From Bugula neritina (taxonomy: Eukaryota; Animalia; Bryozoa): DNA of 64,000 nt. Of this stretch, positions 14,309 through 63,699 are shown in pieces (positions within the stretch are counted from its first letter, which is position 1; every line of letters begins with the position of its first letter). The notes under the pieces are model-generated. The model was not told the DNA's origin, searched no databases, and saw only the letters and a program-made list of their open reading frames with translations. The stretch covers positions 5,880,722-5,944,721 of the forward strand of contig OZ037766.1 of assembly GCA_964035545.1 (NCBI GenBank). The letters run 5' to 3'. The position numbers and the translations under genes are program-made.

Positions 14309-17300
14309 ATGGCTGAAAAGGGTGAGGAAGATATTAACACGGACAACAATACTGCTGAGTCTGGAGAGACTGAAAATGACAACAATGAAGCCAAACCTGC
14401 ACCAGGAACTCGACAGGCACCCCTCACCTCTCAATCTGTTGATACTTCAAGTGGAATTATTGATCATGCAGAATATTTTGATAACAGACCAGAAATGACA
14501 ACTGATTTGAATCCTTTAAATGAAGCACTTTTATTGGGGTATCAAAAACAAGCTGAGAATAGAAGAAGGTTTGAACCTGAAGATTTGCAGGTTGAGCTTT
14601 CTGCAAGTACTATAAGTAGCACGCCTGAATTCCAAACCTCCCATCTGTCTAGAAGGCACATAGACCCTACTTCGCAAGGCAATAATAGTGCTGAAGCTGC
14701 AGAACAAGCTCACCTTACGCATGATGACTTGGGTCGTGTGGATCCAGCAGATGTCGTGCTTTCTATGACAGAGCTGTCAATCTCAGAAGAACCTACAGAA
14801 CCAGATGTTGGTCAGTCAGAGGATTACACTCCAGCTGATGTGCAGACTCCGCCTACACCACCACAACCAGCTGATGAGCACACAGCACCAACAACTCTAA
14901 CAGAAGAGGTTTTGCATGCACCATCCCACTTTGATATATTGTCGGCAAATGAAGAATCTTTACCAGCGACAACAGAAGCATCTGTTAGAGGCAGCAGACT
15001 GACTCACCCAGGAGATGAAGGTGATTGGGATCTCCCAACAGATCCTATTCAACCTGAATCAGTGAGTGTTGTTTTAGTCCTTAGTTTCCTACTTTTATGA
15101 ACTGCCAGTCTACATAATTGTATCAGGTTTGTGACAGTGTCTGGGTAACTTAGATTGTGATTGTCTATCTATTAGCCAACTTGGCAACAGGTTCATAAGT
15201 TTATTGACTATCGAACCTGTTGCCAAATTGGCTAATGGATAAAGACAATCACAATCTAAGTCACCTAGACACTGTCACAAACCTGATACAGTACCAAAAT
15301 TGATGCACAGATCAGATTCTTTGTCATCCAAAATGTCTAAACCGGTGGTCTAGATTCAGAGTGTAAATGTTAGAGTATAAAGTTGTGTGTTCGTATAATA
15401 TCGTAGCAAATGTATTAAGCCTTCAGTTGAAAAAGGGAAGTTAATAAATGTTCATCTGCAGCTGCTTGATCTGAACACACTGACCTGTGCTGTGCTGAGG
15501 ACAGTGAATTGTCGTAACAGCACTGCTAGCTAAGAATAGCTTTTGATGAATGTATTAAAATAAAGCAAGAAAGCTTTAACGATTGGTGGCATACTAATAC
15601 AATAATATAACATTGACCAAGTTCCAAAACATTATTTGAAATCTGTTCCTCATGGTTATTGTGATGAAACTTGTAATTTAAAACTTAAAATATCTGAGTT
15701 ATTATGACTTTGTGCTAATAAAAATTATGATTTAAAATTTAGAATCAGACATTCCTTATTCTACTATTTTTGCTCTGTGCAGAACATATAACTTGATTAT
15801 TATTTCTCTAGCTTCTCTTCATTGATGACAGAGGAAGCCTACAAATATATGACCGCAAGATTGAGGTAAGGTGCATAGAATAAACTATATGAACAGACAA
15901 GTTTTCAATCAAACTGCTCTCACCAAGCAACTGACCGTTACATAAAACAACATTTTTTTTAATTATCTGCTCACAACGAGCTAGGTGCAGTAAAGGAGAA
16001 ATTAAGAAAAGCTTGTGTTCTAGATTAGAAATGTAGCAAAACAAGTTATGTTCTCGCAAGAATTTCAATGATTTAATAATTGACAAACTTGGGCTATCTC
16101 AATTTCTCCACTACTGCTCCTAAATGCTCACAGCTAATTTTATATAAATAATCCTATTGTTTATTGAAGCTGCCCTACTATAATAGGTGCTATTAACTAA
16201 TATAAATCAAAATTTTAGTACTTTCAGGCTACTTACTATTGTATTTGAATGATTGTGGCAATATTGTGGTTGTATTCTGACAGGCTGGGCAATAGATTCA
16301 GGTACTAGGAGAGCCCTAAGCTCAAATCTTGCATATAAGTCAATCTCTTACCCCACCAATAAATAAAGAATTTAAATTTTGTGATGATATCATAGTTCTA
16401 GCTTTAGGTTACACATAACAGGCAAAATGATTAATGTTGAAGTTGGTATAATAGTATGTAGCTAGTTAGATGAGCATACTAGCTAGCGTTAGTGTTAGCT
16501 GTTGCATACCATGAATGATTCAACACGGATGTTTCTGGGTAGTTTTAATATTACTTTTTAACAATATTATCCAAGATTATTATAACAACTGGCTATAGCA
16601 GCTTGCTCAAGTGTTTACGAAAGCAAGATCATGTATATTGCAAGAATGCATCATCTTCCATAGTATATTTTTCTCATTTCTTCCATTAATAATTAATTAC
16701 TCATTTTTATTACATTTCAAGTATAGTGTCAGCCTCATACTATTACCAAAGTAAACTTTTATCTTGCTGGTGTACATTGTGCTTGATACAAAGGGGTATT
16801 TAATCTAGTGGCATGCAGAAGAGGTGCCAGAAAGTGAGCAGATTGCTCAGATGATTGAAAAATTGATCCGCACATTCCACACACAACCAAGTTACAGAGA
16901 GGAGCTCAAGAAGATGCTTGGAGATGCCCAAACTGACAACATAGTGAGTTTTCTAAAGCTTACATTTACTACAATGAATATTTTAATACAATGCAATAGG
17001 TTATATGTCCAATCCAGCCACCAGGGCAGGACCGCAGGAAAGGTGATCAAGAAGTTATACGTATTATATGTGATTCGAGCTGACATTGTATCTACTAATA
17101 GATGGAAACTTCTGTTTCTTCTTTATCCTTTGATCCCAGAAATCACGTGTTCATATTATTTCTAAATTTTGGTGCCTTGATGTAGACCTACAACTTATGG
17201 CAGTCATGTCTACAATGCCAATCACATCGTCTTTCAATGAGAATACCAAATGCTCAGTAGTTTGATGGATTAGTAATTACTGTAATACCTTGAGAGTTAT

Positions 17301-18465
17301 GCTCATTGGTTTAGTGAGATAATCCCTGTAGTCATATTTATATTTGATAAATTTTTTGCAGTGTATATATATATATTTTTTCATAACCAAGATATATTGC
17401 CAATTAATGTCTTTGAATGCATTAAAACCACATGGTTTTTAACTTTTCCAGTGCATGATGAGAGCCATTTTATGTAAATTATCTGTTGATACCGTACTCC
17501 ATTACCAATTGTCACAGCATGGTTTTTATTCTTTTAGTGGCCGGATATTCCTGACAACACAGATGCCACCATCCCACCTGATGCCAGAGATTACTTTGAA
17601 AATTTCAAGCTAGATCTGGTAGACTTAGGAGAAATGCATCTAACCAGTAGTGTAGAAGAGGCTCAGAATGCCCTCTCATTGCTCTGTTCTAATCATGCCT
17701 CTTTGTCCATTGGCTGCTTAACTGGAAAGTTGTCTTTTCCCAACAAGTCCTTCGGTTGTTTTCTTGCCAACTTTGTTAGCGGTAAATTATCTATAGACCT
17801 TAAGAGAGCTGTCTTTTCAAAAACTTTTTTCCGTAATATTAAATGCCCATCAGAATTGAGAATTGGTTGCATCAGAGAAATCTCTCTTGAAGAACAGAGA
17901 TTGGCTGAAAGAGTGCTGAAGATGTTAATCAAACAACATCTCAGAGTACAAGTTTTTCTGCCATATAAATCTATTTCTGAATGCATAAGTAAGGGAGGGT
18001 TAGGTGAACTGCCTATCAGTATATCCACGATGCCCATAGAGCAACCAGAAACAGACAAAAGTCATCTCATCAAAAAGTTGAGAACAGAATTGGATGCGGA
18101 TACGGAATTGAAAGGAGTTTTTTCTCTTTGCTATCCAGGTGAGTAAAAGTTGTAAAATATCTAAGTAGAAGTACAATATATAAAAACAAGGTGGCTACAT
18201 CAGAAATATGGCCACTACACCACGGCTGCTACACACACACACACGCACACACGCACACACGCACACACGCACACACGCACACACGCACACACGCATGCAC
18301 ACACGCACATGCATGCACACACATGCATGCACACACATGCATGCACACACACACACACACTCACACACACACTCACACACACACTCATACACACTCACAC
18401 ACACACTCACATACACACACTCACACACACACTCATACACACTCATACACACTCACACACACACT

Positions 18466-18503
<38 letters not shown>

Positions 18504-21382
18504 CGCATGCAAACACACCCATGTATGCACACACACGCATGCACACACACATGCATGCACACACACACACACTCACACACACACACACTCATACACACTC
18601 ATACACACTCACACACACACACTCACATACACACACACTCACACTCACACACACACTCACTCACTCACTCTCACACACACACACTCACGAACACTCACGC
18701 ACACCCACGCACACTCACACACACTCACACACACTCACGAACACTCACGCACACTCACACACACTCACACACACTCACGCACACTCACGCCCACTCACAC
18801 ACACTCACACATACTGCACACTCACACGCATGTTATAACATAGTTATATATCAGGTGTGTCAAACCTTATCGAGGTGAGGGCCACATTGTAAAATTTAGC
18901 TTGTACTGGAAGCCACAGCACCAGTGACTTTTAACCTACTTTATTCCAAACTCCTATAAAGCATAACACAATGAAGTCCCAATAATTAGTGCAGGTTTTA
19001 TGTTTCTTTAGCATATATAAGAATAAGATATTAAAAGAGTTTTTTTTTCACGCTAATTTATATGTGTACAAAATAATTGTATTTGCTATGGCTTTGGGGG
19101 CCACATAAAATGTGAATGTAAGCTGGAGACCGCATCTGGCACTGGGGCCGCCTGTTGGACAGCCCTGTTATATACACCACCTGACTCTTGAGTCTTAAAT
19201 TACATGATATTTCATATGTCTATACATGTCATATGCAACTTGAAGAGATTATAAAATCCGGTAAAATACATAATTATTAGCAAAAGCTTACTTATATTTT
19301 TTCAGATCCTGATGCTTTGGAGAGCGACTTTAACGTATTTGACAAGGTAATTGTATATTACTATACAGTATACATAACATTAAATGTGCTATCTAACAAA
19401 AGGAATACATGCTATAATAATGTACATGTAATATTGTTAATTGTAAATGCAACAATAAGTCAACATTTTTTTAAAAAATTCGCTAGTTTAGGCAAAACAA
19501 TATTTAAACTATCCAATACGTTCTCAAAACTTTGACAGTATTAAATGATGTTAAATAGCGTGTTATGCTTATAAGTGGCTTATTTAATTCCTATTCTGTC
19601 AACTTCTTTTAGCTATATAAATATAAAGAAATACTAAACTAAATTTAAACTTAATAATTAATTCTCATTAATTTTATTTAATTTATCAAATAAGGGCTCT
19701 ACTTGATCATTCAAGTAATCTATTTGTCTATTGCAGAATATTGCAGAAGCTATTTAATTATTATGCTTTTTTAGTGACTGAAGTAAATGCATAGAGACAA
19801 AAGTTTTACAAATGCAGAAATTATTTGGTGACATTATTAGTTGAATATGCAGCAATCATTCACTATCTGCATTTAAAACTACTTCGAGCCAACACTTGTA
19901 ATTTTAGAGTCAATACACATCCAATGAAAAACTTGAAAAGTTCTTCGAGTGTGGCGCTGGATGTGCTGAGCTAAAGACACGACTGAAACTATTGCCCTGC
20001 CAGCATAAAGTGTGTGGTACATGTCTGCCAAGTATAATGAAAAAAGATTCCTCAGAAAAGAAATGCTCTCGCTGTGACAGGGTAAATTCTAACTAAAACT
20101 TTAGTTAATGCAGTTCAATGCAAATTTTTTATTCAGACTTTCTTGTCAATTTGATAGCGCAATAAAGTTTTGTTAGCATTGAGACATTTCCATGAAAAAT
20201 AAAGTTGTTTTTAGGCATCTCCATTCTCAGTAAAACTGAAAATTTGTAAGTTAGCAGGTATCTGCTTCAGTCCTATTGAGTATCTAGATCAAATGTGGCA
20301 TCACAATATCGGTTTCGTGGCAGTAGGTTTTGATGACTGAAGCATTTAATTGTGAACTTCACACGATAGTGATGTTAAGCTGATCCAAATCTCATTCGTA
20401 ATTTATAGTCTAATATGGATACATAATATGTAATAAAATACCAGCTGTTTTGACTTGCTTGTTTAAGTATTTTTTACAGTTTCACACATTGCAATTATAA
20501 TTGTTCTAGGAATATGAAAAAGAAGTTCATAAGCATGTTATTCGCTGCCCACTTTGCTCAAAGGTAAAACATTTTACACAACATTCTATAAAATTTTATG
20601 TAGCCTACGGTATAAGTTCTACACGTGCTAATAATGTATATTATGGAATCCAACAAATCATCATTTAAGCTTGTTCCTTTTTTACTTCAACTATGCTTTA
20701 TAAAAAAGTGGGTTGTGAAAAAGTGTAAGTCAAGATTTTTTCATGCAGGAACATGATGTGAGAGGAGGGTTTGAAGATTGCCAACACTCATTAGCCATTG
20801 CTGATGTCATTAATCACCCTACTTACAAACAGCTTAAGGCAACGAAACCCAAGCAACAACCCAAAAAACAGGTAAGATAGATAAAACTAAGACAGATAGC
20901 ATTAGTCTAGTAAAACTGTTGCAGTATAAAATAAGGCGCAATTCATAGAATCAAACGTTAGCCTTATATTTTATGATGTAAAACAACTTTGATTTGCTTT
21001 ATGTAGGTTGAACAAGTTCTATCTTCTTAAGCAAGTGAAGTTATATAAAAATTTAATTTATAACATTAGAGTAACTGCATGAATAAATTACAAAAGAATG
21101 GGTTTAGTGTTTATATCTGCCTATTTTATTTCCATTTTACACCTTGAAATAACACATTTTAGTTTTAATTATAAAAATATTTTTAACATGGCATGCTATA
21201 TTGGCTGGCCCAGTTTCAATGCAGTTGGTCTAAAAGTAATTGCCTTCTTCATAGAAGTAGTGGATTAATTCATCTTGGAAAAAATAATAATCAGTGTTTT
21301 GAAGGTAAAGTTACCCCAATGGAGCTCTAGTGTAGGTGATGATGTGATAGTGCTTTTATCAAGATTCTGTTATATTTCACTT

Positions 21383-21453
<71 letters not shown>

Positions 21454-24400
21454 TAGAACAAGCTTAATTAAACTGCTAAATTGCCTAAAAAACTGTTATG
21501 CCGCATAAAAAGTTATTTTTTAGCCAACTATATAACCAAAAAATATTGTGAGGCTGTTAACATCATATTCTATTTTGTGCCTTATATTGGCATGAGTATA
21601 GTTAAAGTATCACATTGCTTCTATTAGTCTTGCTTGATTATATGTAAATAATAATAAACAGCACCTTGTTTTAAAGAATATCAGAAGCTCAGGCAATCTG
21701 TCCGCTGATAATAACCCAAAACCCTTTGATGTAAAAAGCAATGATGATAGTTCGGACATGGCTGCCCAGAAAAGCATGTTGAGAGAAGCATTTGGTGTTC
21801 TTTCAAATGCCTCCAAAAACTGTGAGTATTACCTGTGGGTTGAAAACTAGCTATTGAGTGGCACATGTATCTAAACATAGGTGAATGTTTAGATGTTACC
21901 AGGTGTATACAAAAAACCAAGTAAATATTTATATATTACCAACAACTGTCCATCTGTGAAATCACCTATAATTAATTATAATAATGGGTTGAAAGACTGG
22001 AGAGTAGATATATGATAGATACACTATACATATTAGGCTATAGTTTGTTTTAGAGCTTTGACAGTTTTCATTTTATGATTATAAAATTTCTAGTTTGAAA
22101 TATTGCAGTGAAAAATGGTGAACATTTTTTGAAATGTTTCAGTGTTACTGGACAGAATCTTCGTAGGAGACTTTGTTGAACTTAAAGACAAAGAGGTTAA
22201 GATTGGTGAAAGCAAAGAAGTTGGAGTTGTGACTTATGTGGATGATTATACTGATGTAAGATGTTTTTAGTTATTTTAAAAATATTTGAACATATTTTAA
22301 TCATTGTACAGCTCACAAAACACCACTACTTAAGGCATTGAATTTATTGATTTTTATCCCTATTGGCTTTCACAGTTGCTTGTCAATAAAGTACGTAATT
22401 ATCATGCCTGTTTCTTTATGTAAATGGGCTAATTTACATCACAATGATACAACTCATATATTCTTTAACAAACTATTAACTTTTTGCATAGCACTATAAC
22501 AAGCAGGATGGTTGCATTTTAAACTTTTAAACATTAGTGAACTGATTAATAATTATCATCGTGTTTGTTGATGTGAATGGGCTAATTTACATCATAATGA
22601 CATATCTAAGATATAATGCCTATTTTGATAAATAAAATTATTCTAAACAAGAAGGGTATGTTTAAAACTTTCTAGTCCATAAGGTCAAAAAGTTCCTTTA
22701 AAAGCTTCCTTGTTTTGCAGACTGTAGAGGTAGTTTTTCCTTCAGTTTCTGGTTGGCATGGAAACATTAGTGACTTGACACTCAGCTCTGACAGTTCAGA
22801 TCTACCTGTGAAAGGAGATGTTGTGAAGTTTGTAGATGACACTAACCCAGAGAAACCAGTGCATGGGTATAAATATATTTCACAAACAATGAAATAGTAA
22901 CAAATTCTTTGGGTTAAACTATTATACAGCAAGGTTCATCTTTATGGTGTACAATTGTAGTCTTGAGGTGCGAAACCACATTGCATTATCCACTTGCTGA
23001 ATAATGCAATGTGGTTTGAACAACTCATTTAAATACTGAAAAGAATATTGGGCATACCCAGTGCATGTGCTGATGACTTGGTGTATAATTAAAGTAAGCA
23101 ATTCTATGCAAAAAATTTCCTAGTAACAGTAATTTAGAAGGGAATGAATGAATTTTAGCACTGGAATTCTTAGTGGATGGCCAAAGTTTTTGGATGAAGA
23201 TAGTGCAGAAAGGATTTGTGAAATACAAGTGTTAGTAGAAAATGGTGTACCAATTAAAAAAGGTGGTCAAGTATTTCCTACGATTTCGGTTTCATACAGA
23301 AATATTAAGCAAGAATCATCTCTGCAGGTGACAGCTTTTTTGTAGCTACTAATAAATGTGCATGTATTAAAAATAACATCCTAAAAATCTTGCCAGTGCT
23401 TATATTATTATTATATTATATTATATTATATGCTTATATTATTTCTTGCATGTCTGTTACCAGTTTTGTCCTTCATTAGTACTAACTACTAAAGTATTCT
23501 CACATGCACAGGTTAGCACATAGCACTAATTAAATGACAAACCTCATCTATAATTCAAGTTTTTGTGAATATAAACCTTGGTTGTTAGTGGCGGGGGGGG
23601 GGGGGGGGGGTTGTTGATGCAAAACCACTGCATGTAGTACCTTAGGGGTGTTTTCATTTTACAGTTTTTGTTAGTTTATCTTCACGATTTATTTCAAGGT
23701 GCTTCTTATCCATGTTTATGTAGAATTTCTGCTTCTACTTAAAATTAAATCACAGACTTCTAAATTGTAAGCTAACATGTTAATCAGTACACTGCAATCT
23801 GGGCTGCGTTCTACCCAGTTCTTCAGAACTCCACTGGCTCCCCAATGGTTTAGGAGTATAGTACCTCACATCTCTCAGGGCTGAAAATAGCTTGCAAAAT
23901 AACTGCTCCCACTAGGAATTGAACTTCAAACTTGCAGACCATAGTGCTACACACTAGAAATTTTTATATACCTAACACGCTAGAAATTTTTTCCACCCAC
24001 TGGGATTTGAACCCGAGACCTCTGGCTAACCACTACGCCACAAGGGGAGGGAGAGGGGGACCACTGGGTGAACTCAACACTACATACGCTATGAGGGCTA
24101 CTTTTGAATCACAACACCCAAGTTTAACACTTTTCATCACCATTTCTCTAATCTTCTTTCACTATGGAGTAAACAGTATTCTTGGTATTCTTCGAGTTTA
24201 CTAGATTCATTATAATTAAGTCACTTAACTACAAAATATGAAACAAGCTTTTAACACTTGGTTACCTCAATTTACATTAATCTTAATCAATAATAGTTTT
24301 AATTTTTGCTCGGAGTCACCAGTATCTCATTCGTAAACATCTAAACTAAACTTGCTTTAGTTAGTAATATGCTATATAGTTATTTACTTTTTTTGCTAGT

Positions 24401-26377
24401 ACTTTATCTTCTTTGTTATAAAACTGTTCTAAGACTACAGCTTTCGTGCCTTTTACTAAAATTTAATTGAAATGGCTAGATTGGCGAAAGAGTGCTGGTG
24501 AGAAATGAGATAAATAATGAATATGATAAAGGAACTATCATTAGCTTGGATACAGAAACAGACTCTGTAGTTATTCAGTTATGGGAAAATGGTGAAGAAG
24601 TTTCAGCGAGGTATAATAATGTTGAGAGAGACAGACCTCTGCAAGCTGGAGATTTTGTCATGGTATGTTGAGTTATATCAATTTGACAGCTCCAAAAAAT
24701 ATAAATGTGTACATTATCTCCATATTTGTAGCTTCAGTATTGGTCATAGTCCATCATCAGCTATTTTTAAGATATTATTTCAGTGTCCAATAGCAAATTA
24801 ATGTGAAGAAAGTTTTAATTAATAGTCAAACACTTCACAAAAATGATATAGTTTATAGAATAAATTGAGACTGAAAGGAATGCAAAGCAGTCCTAGCATA
24901 AGAAAACACCAGTCTTAAATTGTTAGCTATTATCTTGCAGGCTCTAACTAACAGTTAGGTGTCAACTTGTTAAATGTCTTAGTATACTCGTGTTTTAGTA
25001 ATGCTGCTAAAGTTACAGGCATCATGTAATGAAAGTAAAATATCATGGTGATAATTACACTTCTACTTGACCCAATTGCTTTATGTCGTTAATGTAAAAC
25101 TGTAATGGACTTGCTTTATTTCATGCTACTTAATATTTTTCACTTTATATAGATTAATGGAACTGGCCAATCATGTATTCAAGGAGATAACAATGCTGGT
25201 GGTGTAGTGTGGGCAAGAGATGGAGAATGTGGCCGAGTTGTGAGAAGGATTCCAACTAGCTCAGGTGAAATATTCTATCCTTTGGATGTCTAGATAGAGA
25301 TGCCTAATGTACATCTGTAGATTAGAGGCCTATAATAACATGTCCAGACTGTATTAATTTTACTGTCAAAATGCATTCTATTTTTAAACTTTAAACCTTT
25401 ATATGCCTTCCACTTGTGTAGCTAGACCGGTACTGTACAACACCGACAAAGGTAAAAGCTAAATATAGTCAAATGTAGAAACCTCATGCTTATTATCATG
25501 GAGCTATATTTGATAACATAGCTGTCTATCTTGTTTTTTTAATGCATATATAACAATATAATCTACTTTTCAGACTACTGTGACGAGGTAGAAGTTGAGC
25601 TATTTCGACTTCCTTATCTTTCACTGACTTTCAGCTGCAAGAATATGATTCAAATCAACCGCAGGAGAGCGTACTCCGAGCAAATGAAATACAACAGGAT
25701 TTTAAATGAATTGTATGTTCATAGATTAATTTACACAAAATCTATATTAAAATGCCACGTTAAGTGATAAATGCTGCATTGGTCACAGCTAATAATTAAG
25801 CACCCTATGCAAACAGCTAAAATCGTCTTTGCTAAAATCAAAACAGAAAACTTATAGCCCTAAGCTTTGATAACTTTATTTAGACTAATGTTATTCTATA
25901 TACCAGCTAATGGTCTCGGATTCTATATATTTTCAGTCATCTCTGGTAAGAAATTCAAAAATTGATTTAAGGCATTATATTAGTAATATTACAAAGTTTT
26001 AGCTGAAGAATTATGTCTTCATTCTGTCTTAAATTTTGCATGTGCAAAATTTAAAAATAATAATATGTAGGCTTTTTAGTAAACAAAAGTTAAGGACCAA
26101 CTTGAAGTAAATAAATATGTAGAAATAGTAGTTTGAGTTTACAGCAACACTTATAAAATAACTATTGTGGAAGATAAAAAAAAGCTCATAAATTATTAAT
26201 CTTATTGTTTCAAAGCAACATATTATTTACGGTAACAAAAACAGAGTATTATTAACATAGTGTGTCACTTTAATTGGTAGATTCTTCTTGGACCGACCAA
26301 ATCTGCTGACAGAGATAACCAGGGATGCATATCCACAGTTAGCAAGTATATCTCAGAAGAGGACCAAAGCAGAGTAA
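14309..26377 (+). CDS. Paralogue A: RING-finger protein with C-terminal Mind-bomb/KEG-type SH3-like repeats (putative E3 ubiquitin ligase, 1012 aa)
   Basis: 16 phase-compatible coding exons: 14309-15061, 15812-15865, 16809-16943, 17538-18138, 19306-19346, 19908-20081, 20510-20563, 20749-20871, 21677-21821, 22143-22255, 22721-22866, 23159-23327, 24480-24662, 25153-25264, 25574-25712, 26281-26377 (TAA). RING CGAGC-x11-CQHKVCGTC...CSRC...CPLC. Repeats begin [27 protein letters not shown] and LQAGDFVMI. Every exon has a counterpart in paralogue B. Confidence 0.88.
15119..15290. repeat. Near-perfect 172-bp palindrome (foldback element) in intron of paralogue A
   Basis: TGTATCAGGTTTGTGACAGTGTCT...AGACACTGTCACAAACCTGATACA, arms about 76 bp, loop about 16 nt. 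Absent from the equivalent introns of B and C. Confidence 0.9.
15984..16120. mobile_element. Short MITE (~137 bp), copy 1
   Basis: Imperfect TIRs GGTGCAG..GGAGAAATT / AATTTCTCC..CTGCTCC flanked by TA. Homologous copy at 55552-55690 in a non-equivalent intron. Confidence 0.65.
18229..18830. repeat. Compound CA-derived microsatellite (CACG, CATG, CACT variants)
   Basis: About 600 bp of imperfect (CA)n. It produces spurious His/Thr ORFs. Absent from the equivalent intron of B. Confidence 0.97.
18852..19167. mobile_element. hAT (Charlie/Buster-like) MITE
   Basis: Termini CAGGTGTGTCAAAC...GTTGGACAGCCCTG. 8-bp TSD TTATATAT / TTATATAC with central TA. Confidence 0.8.
21385..21448. repeat. (TA)n microsatellite
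   Basis: About 32 TA units. Confidence 0.95.
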
Positions 26378-32376: not shown

Positions 32377-33368
32377 GTCCGGGTACCCCTTTATAGTCAA
32401 ACCGAAACTCGTTGAAATCATATTGATGCGGTTGCTCACTTTCTGAAATTTAAATTTGACTCGCATAATAGCTATGTGATGCCCTTTGTAAACGTCGTGA
32501 ATTAGTGAAGCGGAAATCATAAAAGCGATAATTGAGAAGGCGTAGGCTATATAATTATAACCGTATAAGTACGTTGTCTAATCGCCAAAGTAATGACTAA
32601 ATAACGATGTTTACAAGGAGTTACTACTCCTATTCTAAAATTGGCCGATTAAGTTATCACAGTACAAAAATTTCAACGGGTGGCTTTTACAATGCAATGC
32701 AACTCGGAGAAATTTCAACCCGGCCAAATTGAAATTTTGACCGAAAATCGTGAAGGTATAAACGCAACTTCATTTATTTCAATCATTTCTCAACAGCATT
32801 GTATAATATATTTCTGTAGCGTAGAAACCCTTCATTTATTATAACTATTGGTCTCAAAATTTCCGCCAATGCAGAAAATATGCCAAGTGGCAAACAAAAA
32901 TACAGGTGCACATACATTGTTCAATTGAAACTGTTACAACTGTGGCTTTGAAGCAATTGAATGCCATTTCTGACATCACCCTCTTTAAACTCATGACCAT
33001 GGGCCTACTAAATTAATGCTTCACCTGTAGTCTAGACTCTAGAATAAGACTGTTCTTTGGTTATTTTGAAAGTAAAGAGTTACTTGATGATTGTGCTGGT
33101 TGAGCGCTCATACAACAATACTATATCTCACTTCAATCAAATTCTATGGGTTAGTCAGCTCTCTGTTTTTAATAAATTAGAATTATCATTATATCTATTT
33201 AGTTGAATGACTAATTTTTACAGCAATAATATATTTATTACACAAAGTTATTGAATGGAAAAGAGCTCTATCATTTATACAACCCTTTATTATATAAGCA
33301 TAATAGATATAATTTAACATTTAGTGTCCAGTGTCGCAAAATTCCCACATTATTCATTACTTCTTTAA

Positions 33369-33514
33369 ACTGCAGAAGTAATTTTTCCTTCAACTTCTGA
33401 TTGGCATGGAAACAATAGTGACTTGACACTCAGCTCTGATAGTTCAGATCTACCTGTGAAAGGAGATGTTGTAAAGTTTATAGATGACACTGTACCAGAA
33501 AAACCAGTGCATTG
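33369..33514 (+). pseudogene. Orphan copy of coding exon 11 of the RING/SH3 gene family
   Basis: [48 protein letters not shown] matches 22721-22866 and 54564-54709. The GT donor is retained; the acceptor AG is replaced by AA. Confidence 0.85.
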
Positions 33515-36440: not shown

Positions 36441-36507
36441 ACATTCATTATGTTCAGTTTGAATGTAAGAAATATTGAGCACTGGCATCATGATAATTTA
36501 GGCAGAA

Positions 36508-41073: not shown

Positions 41074-41092
41074 CTTCCGCCGACCGTGGGCC
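41049..41092 (+). promoter_or_regulatory. Programmed -1 ribosomal frameshift signal (gag to pol)
   Basis: Slippery G TTA AAC (41049-41055, gag frame), 6-nt spacer, 10-bp stem GGCCCACGGT (41062-41071) / ACCGTGGGCC (41083-41092). pol is in the -1 frame and open across the site. Confidence 0.8.
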
Positions 41093-52200: not shown

Positions 52201-55200
52201 ACAACAAATATATGGAAACTTTGCTGATTTGGTTGCCTCTAATCTTTATTTATTTATTATACACAAGGATATAAAAATACTCTTTTAGATCTACAGCAAA
52301 TATCATGCTTTAGCTGTAGCCTACAGTTTGTGCCACTACAGATAACAGGAGGAAACAAAATCAAAGGCACATCACTCATTTCTACGGTGCCATTATCATT
52401 ACCAGTTAGAACTAAAATTGTTTTTTCTATTTTTACTTCACAAGAACTTTCACTAGAAACAACTTTAGTAACATGTGCTACAAAATTTTGAGTGGAATTT
52501 TCTCTATGAACTGTAGCTAAAGTGCATGGCTGAGGTTTGTGACTGGAATGCGGAAGGGGAGAGGGGTGGACATCAGAATTTATTTGACCGGCTTTTTGTA
52601 CCCTATGACCATTGTGCCCCCTCCTTACTCCTAATGTTTTGTAAATCTTGACCTCATAAATTAACATGTTTAGAGAGACTGTAGATAATTATCTTAACCC
52701 AGCGTTGCAAAAATACTTCAATTGTTTACGTATTTGGAAGAATCTTAAGCTGCTAAACTGCTTAAAAACCGTATACAGCATATAAAAGTTACTTTTTAGA
52801 CAATTGTACGTTCCAAAAAAATTACAAGGCTTTTAACATCGCTGTAAAGGTATAATAGTCATCTCTTAGTTGACTCGGGCTACCCCAAGCTTTGTGTTTG
52901 GGAAAGCTTATGGATTGCCTGCTGCTCGACTTGACTTCTGTTGTATCTCATCCATGCTTGCTTGTGTAGCTTTTAAATGGCTTGTAATTCAATGGGCAAT
53001 CAAAGTTTCATTATGTAGGCCTATGGCCAACTGACAGATGTGAACAGCATAGATTTGGTTGTAGCTTTTGCGAACAGTCACTCTCAGCTCTTTGTTGTAA
53101 ATAGTCGTGAATTTTGCATAACGTGTAGTGTGTCAGCAGGAGACTAAAGGTTTTATGGTATATAATATTATTAATAAAGAACCAGTGAGACATTCCATGC
53201 AACACAGTGACGTACTTCCTCAATAGTAAAACCTCTACAGTAGAGTGAAACTCTGCAGTGAAACCTAACAATCATAATAAGATACTTATTCTATTTCGTG
53301 CTTTACATTGACATTTTTTGAAAACATGAGTTTAGTTGAAGTATTGCAGTACTTTTACTAGTCTTGTCTGACTATATGCAAATAATGATTACCAAAACTT
53401 TTTTTTCAAAGGATAAAAAAAGTTCTGCTGGTGTCAACTCAACAATTGCCAATGATGAAAGTCATGAAATAGCTGACAAGCAATCTATTTTGAGAGAAGC
53501 ATTTAATGTTCTTTCAAAGGCCCCCAAGAACTGTGAGTATTACCTGTGGGTTGAGAACTGGCTATTGAGTGTTACATGTATCCAAACATGAGTGAATGTT
53601 TAGATGTTACCAGCAAATGTATTATGTGTATATAAGATCAGCAGGGTATATACAAAAAACCATGTAAATATTTATATTATATTACCAACAACTGTTCATC
53701 TGTGAGATCACCTAAAATAACAATAGGTTGAAGTGCTGGAGAATAGATATATGATAGATACACTATATATAATAGTTTGTTTTAAGGCTTTGACAGTTTT
53801 CATTTTATGATTATGAAATTTCTAGTTTGAAATAACAATAATGTTTATTGTAGTGGTTGAAGAATGTATTCTTTAAATGTTGTTTCAGTGTTGTTGGAAA
53901 GAATTTTCATAGGAGATTTTGTTGAAATTAAAGACAAAGAGGTTAACGTAGGTGACAGGAGAGAGGTTGGAATTCTAATTCAAGTAAATGACCACGACGA
54001 CGTAAGAATTTAATAGTTATATTAAAATTATATAGTCATTCAAAAATATTGTAACTAAACACTCCTCAGTTCAAACTAAGAAAAAGTTATATTTTATAGC
54101 CAGCACAATACTTTGACTGATACACACACACACCACACACACACTACACACGCCACACACACCACACACCACACACACCACACACACCATCTTTATCAGG
54201 TTTTCTAGTTTCTAATTTATTTTATTTTCCCTAATTGTTACGGGAGTAAATACTTAGCTAAATATCAATTTTGACACCAGTAAACTGCAAATCCTATAAA
54301 TGGTGATAGAGCTACAAATAATCTAAGATATTTTTATTGCATTTATGAGTTTTTATCATTATTGGCTCTCATTGATGCTTTTCAATAAAGTATAATTATC
54401 ATCATGTTTGTTGATGTGAATGGGCTAATTTACATCATAATGACATATCTAAGTTATGATGCCTTTTTTAATTAATAAAATTATTTTAGACAAGATGGGT
54501 ATGTTTAAAACTTTCTAGCCCATAAGGTCAAAAAGTTCCTTTAAGGGTTTCCTTGTTTTGCAGACTGTGGAGGTAGTTTTCCCTTCAGTTTCTGGCTGGC
54601 ATGGAAACATTAGTGACTTGACACTCAGCTCTGATAGTTCAGATCTACCTGTGAAAGGAGATGTTGTGAGGTTTATAGATGACACTAACCCAGAGAAACC
54701 AGTGCATGGGTAAAACAAAATATTCCAAAAACTGTTAAATATAAAAAAAACATAGACAGTTATACAGCAGCATTAATATTTAAGCTGTGATGTAATCTTG
54801 AAGTGCAAAACTTTATTGTTTTTTATTGGTAGAAAGCATATTTTGCTTGAATATCAAAATTAATATTGGGCAGCTATTCCAATTTATCAATACTATAATC
54901 AGTTTAATAACAATATAAAACTGCTGGTATAATACCTGCGATGCACGTTGAAATTAGGGTAAGCAAATCTATGCAAATTTTTAATAGTAACAGTAATACA
55001 CTGCAGAAGAGAGCAGCCATGGTCTATAGGGGTTAGAGTGTTTGCTTGGTAAACATTGAGTAATATGTTCAAAACCCTTGAAAGGCCGTTGGTGAGGCTA
55101 GGAAGAGCATCTAGTCATAATTAGTTCTGTGCCCCATCTGAGTAAGTCCTTAGCTTGCTTTAAAAAAAATTGTCAGGGGGTTTTTGCAGGGATTGTGACT

Positions 55201-57576
55201 ATAAACTTGCGTGAGTAATACATGTACTTTTACAAGATAATGGGTATATTTTAGCACCGGAATCCTTAACCAATGGGGAAAACCTGCTGATAAAACCACT
55301 GTAGAAAGAACTTGTGAAGTGAAGGTCATAGTGGAAAATGGAGCACCAATTAACGGAAAGAGGGACATAATTAGGATCCCATATAAAAATGTTCATCCAG
55401 AACCATATCTGCAGGTAAAAAAAATGTGTAGCTGCAATCAAGTATAATAATATTTGCATGCAAACATTTTAAAAAAGACATTCCTGCAATTGTCCTAACA
55501 AAAATCTTGCATATCTTGCATACTTATAGTTTTAAACTGTGCTATGAGGTAGGTGCAGCAATCGAGAAATTGAGAAAAGCCTGTGTTCTAGATTAGAATT
55601 GTAGCAAGAAAGTTATGTTTTTAACCCAACTCAAAACCTAATAATAAAGTTGAAAAGCTTAGGCTATCTCAATTTCTCCGCTGCTGCTCCTAAGTGCTGG
55701 CTATGATATAGGCTAAAGTTTTCGTTCTTTTTACCAACTTGATTAGGTTGGTGAAGAAGTACTGGTGAGAAGTGAGAAAAACAACAAACACGAGAAGGGA
55801 ACAATTATTGACTTGGAAACAAAAAAAAACTCAGTCATAGTTCAATTATCGGAAAGTGGTAAACAAATATCAGTCAAGTATAATGATGTTGAAAGAGATC
55901 GACTTTTGCAAGATGGTGACTTTGTCATGGTATGCTGCTTTTAATTGATTTTTCTTTTTATTATGAAGTCCTAAATAAATACAATGCTTTTACGTTTGCG
56001 GTTTTATTACTTTGCTAGAACCAACTACTCATGAGTATTCAGATTAACAAAGTTGCTCTGTTCTGTTTTTATTTAGATAAACACAAACTCAATTAATACA
56101 ATGATGTAGCTCAAAAATACTTACGCGCTTAAGCTGAATATAGTCAGTGTATATAAAATAAAATATGTTTATATCACTTATTGTTTACTTGCTTTTTACC
56201 ATAAATAGAAGTCAACATTATACATGAAATATTTTTCAAAAAGTTTATAAATCTAGTTCGTTAATTGAAACAGCCAAAGCATACAATGAAAAAAAAATTT
56301 TCGAACTGACATTGGCAGTTATCATCCCAGCTATTCATATAGCCGGAACAAAACTTAATTACTATAAATAAAGGATCTTTTATTGTAGTTGTTATAGTTA
56401 TAGTTATAGATCAATGCAAATGGTGAACAGGCTATTCAATGTTCTAATGATGCTGGTGTTGAAGTGTGGGCAAGAGACGGAGAATGTGGCAGAATTTTGC
56501 GAATATTTTCTACACGCCCAGGTGCAATATTATTCTATTCAGTGGTAGTTCTCCAATGTCTGTCTAATGTATATGTGTCTATAGGTATATGATGGCAATA
56601 AACATAACTACAGTATTTAATATAGTACATGATAATTCTGAGCTTGAGCCACTTATATGTCTCTTACTTGTCTAACAAGGCCTGTTGTGTGAAACCTCAC
56701 ACAATGACACATGACTTCTTTCTAAGCTCATACTACAATTTCCTCCCACTTATAAATAAATAATTTAAATACAAGCTAAGCAAAGCTAAATGTAGGAGGC
56801 ACATCATCAAAATCATTTGCTAATGACTGTTCATCATGTGGTTTCAATGCATATTTAATGACACATTCTACGTTTCAGATTACTATGATGATGTACAAGT
56901 TGAGCTATTTCGATTCCCATACCTTTCACTGACTTTCAATTACGAGAATATAGTTCGAATCGATCGTAGCAAAGCTTACCCTGAGAAATTGAAATATGAC
57001 CGGATTTTCAATGAATTGTAGGTATAGATAAAATCACACAAAATGTTTATAAGAAAAAGTCATGATGTTAAGCAGTAACTGCCAAACTGGTTATTTCTAA
57101 CTCATTGTAGATAATTAAAAAGTTTTTTGATATATTTTTGTTGTTTGGATGTAAATAATTACTGTAGTAGTACTAAAAAGTTTCAGCTAAAGAGTTATGT
57201 GTTCATTCTGTAATTTGCTTCAATTTTATTCCTCTTAAATTTAGCATTGGCGCCAAATTGAAACAAATAAATATTTAAGAATGACAGTTTATCAAAAAAT
57301 GAATTCGATGGCCTATCAACAATTAAATTAAATACAAAAAATTAAAATAAATATGACAGATGATGAAAAATTTCTTTATGCAATCTCCATTTTTATTGTT
57401 TCAATATTGTTTTAATATTATACGCAGAACAATATAGTGATTATTTATATATATATAGTGGCCATTTTAATTTGCTTGGTAGATGCTTTTTGGACCGAGC
57501 AAATTCGCCAGAGATAACCAGTGATGCACATCCACATTTGGCAAGCACGTCTCAGAAGAGGACTAAAGCAGAGTAG
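46273..57576 (+). CDS. Paralogue B: RING plus SH3-like-repeat protein (983 aa)
   Basis: 16 phase-compatible exons: 46273-46980, 47273-47326, 47556-47690, 48218-48818, 49420-49460, 49815-49985, 50738-50791, 50975-51094, 53412-53532, 53889-54001, 54564-54709, 55255-55414, 55747-55929, 56410-56521, 56879-57017, 57483-57576 (TAG). RING CNAVC...PCQHKLCGSC...CSQC...CPVC. All indels relative to A are multiples of 3. Confidence 0.88.
51170..52633 (-). mobile_element. pogo-like non-autonomous element (inverted homologue of 35217-36440), interrupted by a LINE
   Basis: 51250-51330 and 52145-52500 are reverse-complement matches to 36430-36345 and 36345-35990. Terminus ...GTGCCCCTCCTTACTCC|TA. The left boundary is approximate. 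Confidence 0.6.
51332..52145 (+). mobile_element. 5'-truncated CR1/L2-group LINE (ORF2 C-terminus, 3' UTR, (GATGA)n tail)
   Basis: GVTIDNKLSFDQHIINICSNANKLLHML...YKTVCRPILEFATHTWSP, stop at 51829. Microsatellite tail at 52121-52145. GATGG at both junctions. Confidence 0.85.
54120..54189. repeat. CA / CACACAC short tandem repeat
   Basis: Imperfect (CACCACA)n run. Confidence 0.85.
55010..55215 (+). mobile_element. tRNA-derived SINE, same family as 1100-1315
   Basis: GAGCAGCCATGGTCTATAGGGGTT...GGCCGTTGGTGAGGCTAGGAAGAGCATCTAGTCATAATT aligns to the reverse complement of 1100-1310. Confidence 0.7.
55552..55690. mobile_element. Short MITE, copy 2
   Basis: Homologous to 15984-16120, with the same TIRs and TA flanks. 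Confidence 0.65.
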
Positions 57577-59569
57577 AATATGGCTCATGTACATCTGGAG
57601 AGTTACAGATTGCTTATACAGCGCTGCCATGCATGCATATAGTCATTTTGATGACAGAGTGTTTGAAACAGAAAGTAGTTTATACCTCTATACAAACACC
57701 TCTACTAACAGATTATTGCATTAAAATGCAAATATTTGGACCAAGTGATATCAGCCAACTTTATCATTATTATTATTATTATTGTAGTTTACTCTTTTTT
57801 TCATGACAAGCTAAAATATTGCATGTATACACAGCTGTAGAGTGAGATAATTTCTATTCTGTACACTTTATCTTTTCATTGCTTTTTTATTCAAAGCTTG
57901 TTCACATTACAAAACTTTTGCAATACTTCTAAAAAGTTTACTTTTTAGCAAAAATTTTATTAGAATAGAAATATATTTTAGCGCAATTTTTAAATTATAT
58001 TTACGAAAAGTATGAAATATGTTTTTGTGTGAGTAATTCTTTAATTTACAAGTTTCTCAGCCAATCAAAGTGCATCAGTTCTGAAAAATATGTTTAGCCA
58101 GCTTTGAACATGCAAAACATACCATATTATCATATTTTAAGTGTCACCAGTTTTTAAAAGCAGTGGTAGCCAAAAATGGTCATAATTTTGCAAAAACATT
58201 TCAATGTAGGTAGACTACTTTTTGAAGTTATGCCTAAATCGAAAAATTTTGGCTATTATAATAACTTCATTAAACTTAAGTTGTGCTTTAGCTAGATTGT
58301 AATATTATTTTTTATTAGAAAGCAGTAGATAAATATTATATCACATAAAAATATTTTATGTTGCAGTTGTAATAGGTTTTAGAAAAAAAATCATTGTTTT
58401 TTAAATCCAAGTATAGTTCATCTTTTTTAGACTTTCATCACTGAAGAAATATATATTATGAAAAATATTGATCATGTGTAGAGTGTAGACTATATAATAT
58501 CATATGTAGAAATGTATCATGTTTAAACTTATATATATATAATTATATGTATATGCACGTCCTGGACTGTGTTCAAAATTAAAAGTTATGGCTGCCATTT
58601 CTAAATATAGCATTACAACTCACAAGTTTATTTGACATCTGCTCTAAAATTATTTGTTAGCTATAGTAGATAATTAGAAATAAATACTTGGATTTTCTCT
58701 AAAATTGCATATAATGTTATTTATAGTACATGAGGCAAATTAAGATTCATGCCATTACTGTTGCAAGGCCACACATTTTTCTGAAGATATACTTGTGTAT
58801 ACAGCTCATAGACAATGTTGCCGTAACTGTATATTTAAATACAGCTAAATAAGATAACTCTATATGTTGTGCTTATAATGATGTGAAATCAAAATGAAAC
58901 CAATATACATATTATTATATTATACGAAAACAGATTTTGTACATGTTGCTAAAGTTGTATATATTTAGAGATAACTAAATAAGTTACATATGATATAGCA
59001 TATTATATTGTGTTTATAATAGAAATATATTAAAACTTATTTTATGATCAATATGTACACATATTATCTAATCTACATGTATAATAATATATAAAATAGG
59101 CCCTATTATTTCTTTATTTCAAATATAAATTAATGCAGTTTTAAAAAGGACTATAGTAGACATATATATCACCACCAGGCGTATAGATGTATTAAATAAC
59201 TAACCGGAATGAGTTTCAAGTCTGAAACCAATACTTTAAACTTACCTATGCAAATGTGTTTCATAAACAAAAGATATTTTCCATATGCTGCTAAAAGGTT
59301 GCAAATGAATTTTGTATTTTTAAAATCTGCTATGTTTAGTTCCATGGCATTCTTTGTTTTGTAATCAGCAGACTTGCCCTTTACTAAGCCTAGTTATTTA
59401 TTAATTACCAAGTTATTCATAGCAACAGAGCTTGTGCCTGAGAAATTAAAGTGGAATAAATATATTTAGATAATGGATTCCATAACAAAGGAGATCAACA
59501 GTGTGTAAACGATCTATGCATTGTGTAAGGTTATATGGTACTTATTTCAATGATTTCATTGAATTTGGG

Positions 59570-60042
59570 GGAAGACACCATATTTTGGATATGTATTCAC
59601 GTCTGCCACAACTTTATTTTGGCCTTAAAAGCATTAATGGTGCTATAAAAGGCAATGATGTGCTGATGGAATTCATACATCTATAGGTTTAAAATATTTA
59701 GTGCAACAAATATATCTAGTAGGTATGCAGCATAAAACTGTTCATGGAGATCAGGCTGCATTGCCTTGAAAAGCTCCTGTTGGTTTTTACTTTCAATTGA
59801 AACTTCTTAACCTTCATTCAAAATAACACAGGTAGTAGTTAAAGTATAGCAATTAATATAGACACATGCACGTGGAGTATAGCGTGAGTAAATAAATTCA
59901 CTAAGATAAATTTTTTATGCTTGAAAAACAAAGCAAGAGCTCAAAAGGCGTTAAGGAACTGTGAGAAATCTTTAGAAATAACACCCCTTTCCCCAAAGCC
60001 ATAATGCGCCAAGGGGAAATTCCCTCAGGTTCAGAGCCACTG
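59570..60042 (-). mobile_element. hAT-Buster remnant, opposite terminus of the element at 34027
   Basis: Ends ...AGGTTCAGAGCCACTG followed by TTATAAAT. Internal part homologous to 34670-35045. Confidence 0.7.
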
Positions 60043-61159
60043 TTATAAATGATATTGCATACAAATTTTACCTCAACTCAAAGCTTCAGTAAATTAGTGT
60101 ATATCAATACAGCTTATGCAGAACAAATATTTGGGTCATTAAACTAAACTAAAATACATACAAAATACTGAAGAGTGCAGCACAAGTTTTTATTTACCAA
60201 ATTATGACAACTTGTTGCAGTATACACAACATTTTCCTTTCTCATCTGTTGCATGTATGTCTATGAGTGAATGACGAAATTTAATCTTATTTTCTAAATT
60301 GCCTTTTATGTAAAACTGGACTTTTATCACAAACAATTTCTAGTGAGGCAAATTATTATTTTTTGTTTGCATGTAGTATATGTTAATATATTATATGTAA
60401 TATGGATAAATATTGATAAATATGAGTAAATATGAATAATTATTGGTAAATATGGGCAAATACACATATAATGCCTATAATGTTGGTCACGTTTTATAAC
60501 AATTAAGTGTGGTTTACCTCATTCAGAGCCTTTCCATTAATTGATGATTGAGCCTTTTTTATTGCAAAAATAAATTTTGCTGGCAGCTTGTTTTATTGGT
60601 AAACATTTTACACATGCACATTCATGATGTTTAGTCTGAATGTAAGAAATATTGAGAACAAATATTATGATAATTTAGGCTATTAGTAGTTTATCAAATA
60701 TGTAAAGTATTATTGTAGTAGTCTGTAGCCGGTCCTGCAGTGTTAATATAATATAATTATATATAAGGGGACTATACATTTTAGAGGCAAGAAATATTTA
60801 ACATTCTCAGTACTGAGGGAAAAACCTGCATGCTATAACTTGTGTAATATATGAATAGGGTGGCCATTATCGGTGCATGCAATCTTTTGCAGTCTCTTGT
60901 TCTGTTAGAAACTGCAGCACAATAGCTATAGCAGATGAACATTAGACTAGTGTCATTGTTGCTATCACAGCTATTGACAGTTTATTACTCACGCAAAAAT
61001 AGGTCCGTTGTTTTAGATAAGAAAATTTTCTAATAAATCATCAAAATGCAATTTCACAATGACATCTGAATTAATTTGCCAACCACCAGTATAATTAGGT
61101 TATCATAAGACTAATATTTGATTATATATGTTAACTTGGACATGTGCCAATTAAAGTAT

Positions 61160-61312
61160 TAATACGCCCCCAAAAGTTTGTGTTAACTTCTACAAAGTCT
61201 TGTGATTGGTCAATTATGCAGTCACTAGGAAGTAGCTACCTGGTGTTGAGGGGTTGCAGCTGCTCTGATACTAGTTAAGATAACTAACTGACTAACTCCA
61301 ACAAATTTCAGT
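61160..61312 (+). promoter_or_regulatory. Putative promoter and non-coding first exon of paralogue C
   Basis: TTGTGATTGG at about 61200, AGGAAGTAGCT at about 61227, donor GTAAGTTTTTA at 61311. Confidence 0.55.
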
Positions 61313-62588
61313 AAGTTTTTATAATGTACAGAATGTATTGGGTATAAATGAATGTAGTTTGTAAGCAGTAGGTACACATGTCACTAGGAGTGAGAGATAT
61401 TGCAGATATTGTTAGCATCCAGGTTGGAACCTACACTTTAAGCAAAGCCTATATAGCTAATGCATGTATTACACTATATACAGCTTGGCTAGGCTAAGCT
61501 AGGTTAGGTTGTGAAAGATAGGAACAAGGGGTAGAACAACTATAAGAATATAAATTAAAAAAATATTTGTTCTATGCATTTGCTAATCAACTCAGCTTTT
61601 GAAAAGAAAATATACTTTTATTAAAAGACTTAGGAGCTCTCTGGTCTTTGGTTCATAATCAGCTGGTAGGATACTTACACTTTGTTATGCTTAGTGTTTC
61701 GAAAAGTTAATCATATCAATAGTCTGTGCCCTAGTCTACATACTAAATCTACTAAATCCATGATATTTGCTCCAGAAAAGTGTTTTATGATTTAAAAGAT
61801 CAAAAGTTTGCAATTGCTGTGTTGTGTAAGAATAATTAATAAAAATATTTCCGGAAAAACTCTGAATTTTTATTGTAGAATTTATTTCTGTAATGTGCAA
61901 GCCTTGTGAGTCTCAAACCTTCAAATAGCAATACAAATAATGTTAAGAGACAGTAAAGACATGTAAATAGAATACATGATAGAGCTTAGTCAAGGCCAGA
62001 ATTTTCAGGTTAATGTAATTCTTCAATAATTCAATATACTGTGAGATAGCTCCTGCTTTGCAAATTGCAATATTTGTGTAGAATTTATTGGTTGAATGAT
62101 CACCTTGCCATTCAGTCCATTGTATCTTAGATATTTTTATCATATTATGTCTGTGAGTTGAAACAATATTTTCATGGCTTATCATTTAATCATTGACCTG
62201 TCTAGCCTAAAATCAAATTAGGATCATCCAACTAAAAGGTAATCAGCACAAGATATAATTTTTAATTTATTATACAAAGCAGTCAACTTGTATTGGTATA
62301 GTGTAACTGAAGCTCAACTGCAAATCGAAGTAATGGCTGTTTTTTGTTTATCCTTTTACAATATTATTCCTTTTTACAATGAAAGAAAAGAGATTTCAAA
62401 GCTAAAAAGTTATTAATAAATATAAATTTCAGAAGAAATTTTAATTAAGGCTCCAATTTTAAAAGATAGCAATTGCCAATTTACCAATTTTATGTTATTC
62501 AGAATGTTTATCTATATAGCTGTTTAATATTATTTCTGCAAAATATAACTCCTGTTTCAGATTCCAAAGATTTATCCCATACTTTAAC

Positions 62589-63699
62589 ATGGCTGAAGGG
62601 GGTAAGGAACATATTTACACAGACAACAATGCTGTTGAACCTGGAGAGACCAATAAAGACAAAAAAGCCAAATCTTCACCGGGATTTCAACAGACACCCC
62701 CCACCTCTCAATCTGTTGATACTTCAAGTGAAATTATTGATCATGTAGAAGATTTTGATAACAGACCAGAAATGACAACCAATATCAATCCAGTGAGTAT
62801 AGCACTTTTATTGAGGCACCAAAAGCAAACTGGGGAAAGAAGAAGGTTTGAACCTGAAGATTTGCGGGTTGGGCCTTCAGCAAGTACTAGTAGATCCTCT
62901 GAAATTCAAAGCTCTAATCTGTTCGAGCAGCAAATAGATTCTCCTTCACAAGGCAATAATAGTGCTGAAGCTGCAGAACAATCCACACAGTCTACACACT
63001 ATGACTCAAATCGTGTGAATCCAGCTGACGTTGTGCTTTCCATGACAGAACTGTCAATCTCAGAAACACCATCAGAACCAGGTACAGGTCAGTCAGAGGA
63101 TTACACTCCAGCTGATGTGCAAACTCCGCCTACACCACCACAACCGGCTGATGAGCACACAGCACCAACAACTCTATCAGAAGAGGTTCTGCATGCACCA
63201 TCCCACTTTGATATATTGCGGGCAAATGAAGATTCCTTACCAGTGACAACAGAAGAATCTGATAGAGGCAGCAGGGTGACTCACCCAGAAGATAAAGGTG
63301 ATTGGGGTCTCCCAACAGAACCTATCCAACCTGAATCAGTGAGTTTTAAAATTTTATTTTTTAGGCACTGCTCGTCTTTGTACAAATATGACATTGACAA
63401 AGTCGTAAACTGTAAAGCTTTGTTAAATGAGAGCTGTTCCTAATAACTGTAGTGTGGAGTTTACCCAGTGGCGCGTGTCCCTGCTCAAATCTCAATTGGA
63501 GCAAGAGTTTTATATCGACATACTGTAACAAACAAGTTGTAAATGTTTTCAAAACTTAGCACATCTAAGAATTATTAGAACTCTGTACTAATTATAATTA
63601 TGATTTAAAATTTAGAATAAGACATTCCTTATTCTACCATTCTAGCTTCTCTTCATTGATGACAGAGGCATACTAAGGATATATGAGCACAAAATTGAG
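62589..63699 (+). CDS. Paralogue C, first two coding exons (gene continues beyond the window)
   Basis: Exons 62589-63338 (MAEGGKEH...EPIQPES) and 63646-63699 ([18 protein letters not shown]), with the same splice sites as A and B. Confidence 0.85.

Follow-up and report, generated by a model that had tools for sequence, protein, structure and literature searches.

RNF17/TDRD4 joins an N-terminal RING to extended Tudor (Tudor-SN) domains of ~180 residues, and UHRF1 and UHRF2 follow the order UBL - tandem Tudor - PHD - SRA - RING. Mind bomb 1 and 2 are laid out as MIB/HERC2 - ZZ - REP - ankyrin - RINGs, with the RINGs at the C-terminus, and TRIM proteins as RING - B-box - coiled coil. Here we compare with these systems a gene family from the bryozoan Bugula neritina, found in a 64,000-nucleotide stretch of GenBank assembly GCA_964035545.1 (contig OZ037766.1, positions 5,880,722 to 5,944,721 of the forward strand), referred to below as the window; coordinates are those of the window unless stated otherwise. 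The window is AT-rich (~33% G+C) and contains long (CA)n microsatellites, long terminal repeat (LTR) retroelements, and multi-exon genes. Our analysis indicates that the locus probably contains three intact paralogues, in tandem, of a 14-exon gene, a candidate RING E3 ubiquitin ligase in which an unnamed domain is followed by the RING, a linker, and about four Tudor/SH3-like barrels.

Comparison of the window with itself by blastn revealed collinear blocks for three copies: A at 14226-39905, B at 46190-62238, and C from 62347 onward. To cover copy C, 40 kb of contig beyond the window were added, and in this extended sequence the copy was traced to coordinate ~87227, ~20 kb past the window end. 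Exons were located from translations of the conserved blocks, compared among copies, and sequence searches and fold predictions were run exon by exon. Each copy comprises 14 coding exons, all on the + strand, that are stop-free in A, B, and C and separated by GT-AG introns throughout (all acceptors are AG and all donors GT in the three copies), with phases in agreement at 13 of 13 junctions, four split codons included. An earlier, sequence-only reading of the window had reported three tandem paralogues, none of them visible as a single open reading frame (ORF), and both points are borne out by the collinear blocks and by the 14 open exons in each. The coding span of copy A extends from 14309 to 25767 (~980 codons) and that of copy B from 46273 to 57021 (~935 codons); copy C, with ~961 codons, has exon 1 at 62589-63338 and exons 2-14 outside the window, at contig positions ~5945068-5964804. 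At the stop position common to B and C, copy A carries TAT, which adds 17 residues to its product (25714-25767). The copies are real, intact, and tandemly triplicated. Protein and profile searches of the 216-Mb assembly (321 contigs) found exactly three of them in the genome, a count that does not sustain the earlier description of the family as expanding.

From their sequence, the 14 exons are predicted to be joined by splicing. The RING/barrel half has no start codon preceding the RING in exons 4-5 and therefore needs the upstream exons, and given this lack of a separate start together with the shared phases, one gene per unit is the economical reading. Exon 1 (14309-15061 in copy A) opens with an ATG, encodes 251 acidic, Pro/Ser/Thr-rich residues, and ends at a phase-0 donor, GTGAGT. 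Among the copies it spans 236-251 residues, with 18-21% Asp+Glu, 5-7% Lys+Arg, 9-10% Pro, and 20-22% Ser+Thr, in agreement with the acidic, Pro-rich N-terminus noted previously. It is the least constrained part of the gene, with a ratio of nonsynonymous to synonymous divergence (dN/dS) of 0.65-0.68, a Pfam scan of it was without match, and this acidic N-terminus is probably disordered.

In contrast with exon 1, exons 2-4 (45, 200, and 14 residues, ~260 in total) form the most conserved part of the gene (dN/dS 0.16-0.31). The unnamed module begins in exon 2 (16809-16943; 45 residues), which is 93-100% identical in amino acid sequence among the copies (dN/dS 0-0.2). Exon 3 (17538-18138; 200 residues and one nucleotide) holds the core of the putative alpha/beta domain, and exon 4 (19306-19346), only 41 nt long and flanked by AG and GT in each copy, bridges the reading frame between exon 3 (phase 1) and the RING exon (phase 0). 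Exons 1-4 of copy B lie at 46273-46980, 47556-47690, 48218-48818, and 49420-49460. No Pfam match was obtained for exons 2-4, and for exon 3 a PDB sequence profile search was without match and an ESM Atlas feature search led to unnamed clusters, the best at 0.88. An AlphaFold2 (AF2) model of exon 3, built from an 11-sequence alignment, has an alpha/beta fold with a predicted local distance difference test score (pLDDT) of 80 and a predicted template modelling score (pTM) of 0.73, and no fold relative of this model emerged from Foldseek against the PDB (best E 0.23), a wide VIA-align search (best Z 4.5), or an ESM Atlas structure search (TM <= 0.34). The previous description of a conserved domain ahead of the RING that could not be named thus holds for ~260 residues across Pfam, PDB sequences, and known folds. 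We tentatively propose, as a view somewhat short of probable, that this module is an undescribed domain, possibly with a new fold, and that together with the RING and the Tudor-like barrels it makes up a new E3-ligase architecture that would occur only in bryozoans and in a few relatives not yet sampled, be multi-copy there, and turn over by gene conversion. Since the libraries searched hold no sequence or fold relative, the orphan domain is a reasonable target for structure determination. The intron that follows exon 3 is 1170 bp long in A versus ~600 bp in B and C, and in copy A it contains an imperfect CA-rich tract of ~690 bp (18191-18878).

A HMMER search with the exon-3 domain against 1.84 billion representative proteins returned seven matches, all to unnamed fragments of 117-263 residues: one for a Bugula-linked Joint Genome Institute (JGI) group, four from run SRR25569768, one from run SRR25569774, and one ENA-assembly cluster. 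The presence of four matches in the single run SRR25569768 implies another organism with several paralogues. In the alignment, the distant relatives are 25-32% identical to copy A exon 3 and cover a region that corresponds to the extent of the exon; in their flanks no RING core was seen, on contigs of 1.1-4.2 kb that are too short to tell. A literature search for the accessions of their runs returned nothing. A word search with exon 3 recovered only fragments 84-85% identical, from JGI. The closest relatives outside the assembly are contigs of JGI sample 3300002729, whose records carry the prefix AY690838, under which the mitochondrial genome of Bugula neritina is deposited in GenBank (PMC2678162). 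Variants in this sample are only 82-96% identical to the window copies, indicating that it represents a related but different genome, and at least six distinct exon-3 variants occur in it. One of its contigs (8889 bp) carries exons 1-9 in the same order. In it, exon 1 lacks a large internal part and exon 3 contains a frame break with a stop, and this copy may be a pseudogene. The gene is lineage-restricted, and, to judge from the sequence collections searched, the combination of orphan domain, RING, and barrels appears in no named protein, in keeping with the new architecture that had been suggested.

The RING is encoded by exon 5 (19908-20081 in copy A), a C3HC4 element that in this copy has the form C-x3-C-x11-C-x-H-x2-C-x2-C-x13-C-x2-C. 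The three copies A, B, and C share all eight ligands, and the exon scores 26.1, 24.7, and 25.3 bits, respectively, against Pfam PF00097, in each case above the cut-off of 21. Exon 6 (20510-20563; 54 nt, phase 0/0) supplies an extra Cys-Pro-x-Cys pair and is conserved and phase-symmetric in the copies. Exons 7 (20749-20871) and 8 (21677-21821) encode the linker, with the acceptor of exon 8 in copy A taken as the AG common in phase to A and C. In copy B, exons 5-8 are located at 49815-49985 (the RING), 50738-50791, 50975-51094, and 53412-53532. The sequence-only reading had called the domain a TRIM-like RING; the PF00097 matches in all copies confirm the RING, and nothing specific was found for the TRIM-like part.

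Downstream of the linker, exons 9-14 encode the putative barrel repeats. In copy A, exon 9 (22143-22255) contains the first half of repeat 1, joined to exon 8 by a phase-1 junction that fits all copies, exon 10 (22721-22866) the end of repeat 1 and the start of repeat 2, and exon 11 (23159-23327) the remainder of repeat 2, following a phase-2 junction that likewise fits. Exon 12 (24480-24662) encodes the entire repeat 3 and the start of repeat 4, exon 13 (25153-25264) the middle of repeat 4, and exon 14 (25574-25767) its end, the C-terminal tail, and the stop. The corresponding exons of copy B are at 53889-54001, 54564-54709, 55255-55414, 55747-55929, 56410-56521, and 56879-57021. A start motif, Gly-Asp/Glu-x-Val, and a last-strand motif each occur four times in register over these exons. 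A degenerate extra copy of exon 10 (33357-33542, + strand; 79% identity by tblastn, two in-frame stops) sits in the 3' flank of copy A, within a stretch at ~29-34.6 kb that is specific to this copy.

Repeats 1, 2, and 4 straddle introns, and the fold was modelled for repeat 3 only. AF2 predicts a small barrel of four strands for repeat 3 (pLDDT 76), whose top structural match is the RDM15 Tudor (Z 5.6, root-mean-square deviation 1.7 over 46 residues), with further matches to SMN, PHF1/PHF19/MTF2, TDRD3, and TDRD4 (Z 5.0-5.1 for SMN, PHF19, and MTF2) and Foldseek probabilities of 0.9-0.99. By language-model features in the ESM Atlas, repeat 3 lies near Tudor_3/Agenet clusters (0.90, 182 shared features), and in copy B it reaches several SH3-like Pfam families below threshold. 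The modelling thus supports an SH3/Tudor-like barrel for repeat 3, and a barrel fold may be presumed for repeats 1, 2, and 4. Regarding the four beta-barrel repeats described previously, which had been expected to model as SH3/Tudor-like barrels, the fourfold register of the motifs stands and the fold is borne out by AF2 and Foldseek for repeat 3 alone, with no significant alignment between the repeat exons. A PDB sequence match of repeat 3 to Cpl-7 cell-wall-binding repeats (E 9e-5) was rejected as a three-fold coincidence of short motifs.

The Tudor matches raise the alternative that the family acts as a methyl-mark reader tied to ubiquitination, with the barrels binding methyl-Lys or methyl-Arg, as in UHRF1 or piRNA-pathway Tudor proteins such as RNF17/TDRD4, and steering the RING to chromatin or ribonucleoprotein targets. 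That the leading fold matches RDM15, SMN, PHF1/19, TDRD3, and TDRD4 are methyl-reading Tudors, and that Tudor_3/Agenet clusters are nearest by language-model features, would be consistent with such a role. However, KOW and designed or generic SH3 barrels score equal to Tudors for repeat 3, and no Pfam TUDOR, Tudor_3, or Agenet-type match was found in the exons scanned, with DUF4537 reaching only E 0.066. Moreover, at position 15 of repeat 3 copy A has Tyr whereas the other two copies have His, and at position 35 A and C share a Trp where B has a non-aromatic residue; this variation of aromatic cage positions among paralogues makes a canonical methyl-reader function doubtful. We therefore regard this role as unlikely.

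The repeats had been assigned by the sequence-only reading to the Mind bomb/KEG type, which implies that they are Mind bomb REP or KEG HERC2-like modules and that the family is kin to those E3 ligases in rearranged form. Both groups do combine a RING with several SH3-like barrels, and the loose Gly-Asp-x-Val ... Val-x-Val-x-Phe pattern would fit such a kinship. Nevertheless, no match to SH3_15 or MIB_HERC2 was obtained at E up to 1 in the repeat exons scanned (exons 9-14 of A and of B, and exons 11 and 14 of C), and Mind bomb structures were absent from the top 50 fold matches of repeat 3 in both searches, in which Tudor, KOW, and SH3 barrels were nearest. The RING also precedes the repeats here, and matches to ankyrin, ZZ, kinase, and B-box domains were lacking in the exons scanned, an absence that the same reading had correctly noted. 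A relation to Mind bomb or KEG is not demonstrable, the family is small, and we consider such kinship highly improbable.

Several observations weigh against a functional 14-exon ligase gene. No transcript evidence was found, and the spliced product is absent from the protein collections searched. The first ligand pair of the RING is C-x3-C, where the usual spacing is C-x2-C, and the PF00097 alignments begin after the first Cys. Alignments between repeat exons by hhalign were in register and not significant (probability <= 12%), leaving the four-fold repeat unproven, and the fold matches of repeat 3, a barrel of 60 residues, have little strength on an absolute scale (Z ~5, Foldseek E 0.2-0.8). 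For the exon-3 domain, a pLDDT of 80 was reached by one of five AF2 models, and in copy C a retroelement in the last intron may impair the gene.

Some of these points would also fit an alternative in which the product is not a ligase, with the RING serving as the structural zinc module of a scaffold, or in which each unit yields two products, one from exons 1-3 ending just inside intron 3 and one from a separate RING/barrel transcript. The non-canonical first ligand pair and the lack of RNA evidence are compatible with it, as is a TAA two codons inside intron 3 in all copies, at which retention of the intron would truncate the protein. Conversely, the conservation of eight ligands and the scores above the PF00097 cut-off in all copies argue against it, as do the continuity of phases across the 41-nt exon 4 in three copies and the lack of a start codon ahead of the RING in exons 4-5. 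Taken together, these data make the alternative an improbable one, and a single 14-exon gene per unit remains our preferred interpretation.

To assess the forces acting on the copies, dN/dS was estimated by the Nei-Gojobori method over 930-956 codons, yielding 0.43 for A-B, 0.35 for A-C, and 0.39 for B-C, with synonymous divergence (dS) of 0.27-0.40. The RING, linker, and repeat groups have ratios of 0.24-0.53, and across all exon groups the range is 0.16-0.68; exon 11 lies at 0.64-0.76, and values above 1 are limited to the exons of 13 and 18 codons, where they represent noise. The family is under purifying selection. Amino acid identity between A and B is lowest in exons 8 (0.45), 11 (0.45), and 13 (0.54) and highest in exons 10 (0.96), 2 (0.93), and 3 (0.83), and the sequence-only reading was correct, at the amino acid level, in placing the strongest A-B divergence in the linker and in most of the repeat exons. 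For these most diverged exons, dS is 0.5-0.9 in pairs with B, versus 0.13-0.29 in exons 1-3. In the RING exon, dS is 0.76-1.43, far above that of neighboring exons and alignable introns, with dN/dS at 0.10-0.19 (19908-20081 in A and 49815-49985 in B, compared with L001:4635-4805 beyond the window), a value that is possibly noise given its 57 codons.

Which two copies are closest by dS also depends on the region: B and C in exons 1-2, A and C in exons 7-14, and A and B in exon 10, the only exon for which these two are the closest pair. Around exon 10, a 356-bp tract (22549-22904 in A versus 54392-54748 in B) displays 91.6% DNA identity between A and B, with surroundings at ~80%, and is likely a gene-conversion tract. 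The shifting of the closest pair, together with the raised dS, points to partial homogenization, by gene conversion or unequal crossing-over, superimposed on an older split, and the raised dS of pairs with B fits an older, non-homogenized 3' half of copy B. The copies would have arisen by local duplication of a 16-25-kb unit, with later gene conversion or unequal crossing-over homogenizing some parts.

The uneven divergence had instead been attributed to diversification of substrate or pathogen recognition, and a fast-diversifying family for recognition, in immunity or towards pathogens, whose linker and barrels are under positive selection, would be consistent with the tandem copies, with the low A-B identity in exons 8, 11, and 13, and with the exon-3 variants of the Bugula-linked sample. 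Yet in the per-exon comparison no exon group exceeds a dN/dS of 0.68, and high dN accompanies high dS where identity is low, so diversifying selection is not indicated; with three genome copies only, we judge this scenario quite unlikely, somewhat more so than the methyl-reader role. Partial homogenization of copies under purifying selection is the interpretation that we retain, and the locus offers a clear case in which uneven divergence of paralogues stems from it and not from positive selection.

Mobile and repeated sequences also occur around the copies. A Ty3/Gypsy-type LTR retroelement with 55% G+C lies between copies A and B (40201-44340, + strand), with Pfam matches to a zinc knuckle, aspartyl protease, RNase H, and an integrase zinc domain. 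No reverse-transcriptase match was found between its protease and RNase H, and its integrase core is in a separate ORF, suggesting that the element is internally deleted and broken. A second Ty3/Gypsy element, on the strand of the gene, occupies L003:3962-9147 (contig ~5956961-5962146) in the last intron of copy C and contains a 1429-aa pol ORF (protease, reverse transcriptase, RNase H, integrase); it explains the 8346-bp length of the intron between exons 13 and 14 of this copy. A dispersed repeat of ~1.3 kb is present inverted in intron 7 of copy B (51240-52624), and also in the 3' flanks of A (35232-36438) and C (extended coordinates 86014-87227); its 139-aa ORF (51410-51829) has no Pfam match, and the repeat is probably a mobile-element fragment. 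Upstream of copy A are a near-perfect (CA)n of ~600 bp, within the tract 11156-11921, and, at 2882-6896 (+ strand), open stretches of 98-130 residues that resemble exons of another gene and have no Pfam match.

Based on the data presented above, the product would be an intracellular protein of 935-980 residues acting as a single-subunit RING E3 ubiquitin ligase, in which a charged E2 would dock on the RING and the array of barrels, perhaps together with the unnamed domain, would serve to bind a substrate or partner. We infer both the ligase activity and the binding role of the barrels. If this model is true, it gives a phylum for which functional annotation is very sparse a RING-protein architecture so far unannotated. 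Animal genomes commonly contain RING proteins restricted to one lineage, no long-standing question is touched, and the significance of the gene family is modest.

Among the described systems, TRIM proteins resemble the family in having a C3HC4 RING with another Cys-Pro-x-Cys element behind it, but no zf-B_box match was found in exons 5-7, no coiled-coil module turned up, though no test was aimed at coiled coils, and ~510 residues precede the RING. UHRF1 and UHRF2 likewise hold a Tudor fold and a RING in one polypeptide, but here the domain order is different, UBL, PHD, and SRA matches are lacking, and the aromatics are not conserved. Mind bomb 1 and 2 and plant KEG are RING E3 ligases that also use small SH3-like barrels to bind; in contrast, the barrels of the Bugula family follow the RING, and no SH3_15, MIB_HERC2, ZZ, ankyrin, or kinase match accompanies them. 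RNF17/TDRD4 shares with it one RING joined to several Tudor-fold modules, and repeat 3 aligns with the TDRD4 Tudor core 2eqk at a Foldseek probability of 0.95 (TM 0.51, 26% identity over 43 columns). Unlike in RNF17/TDRD4, however, the units have no PF00567 match and are ~60-75 residues long, and the RING lies ~510 residues into the protein, behind an unrelated domain of 260 residues.

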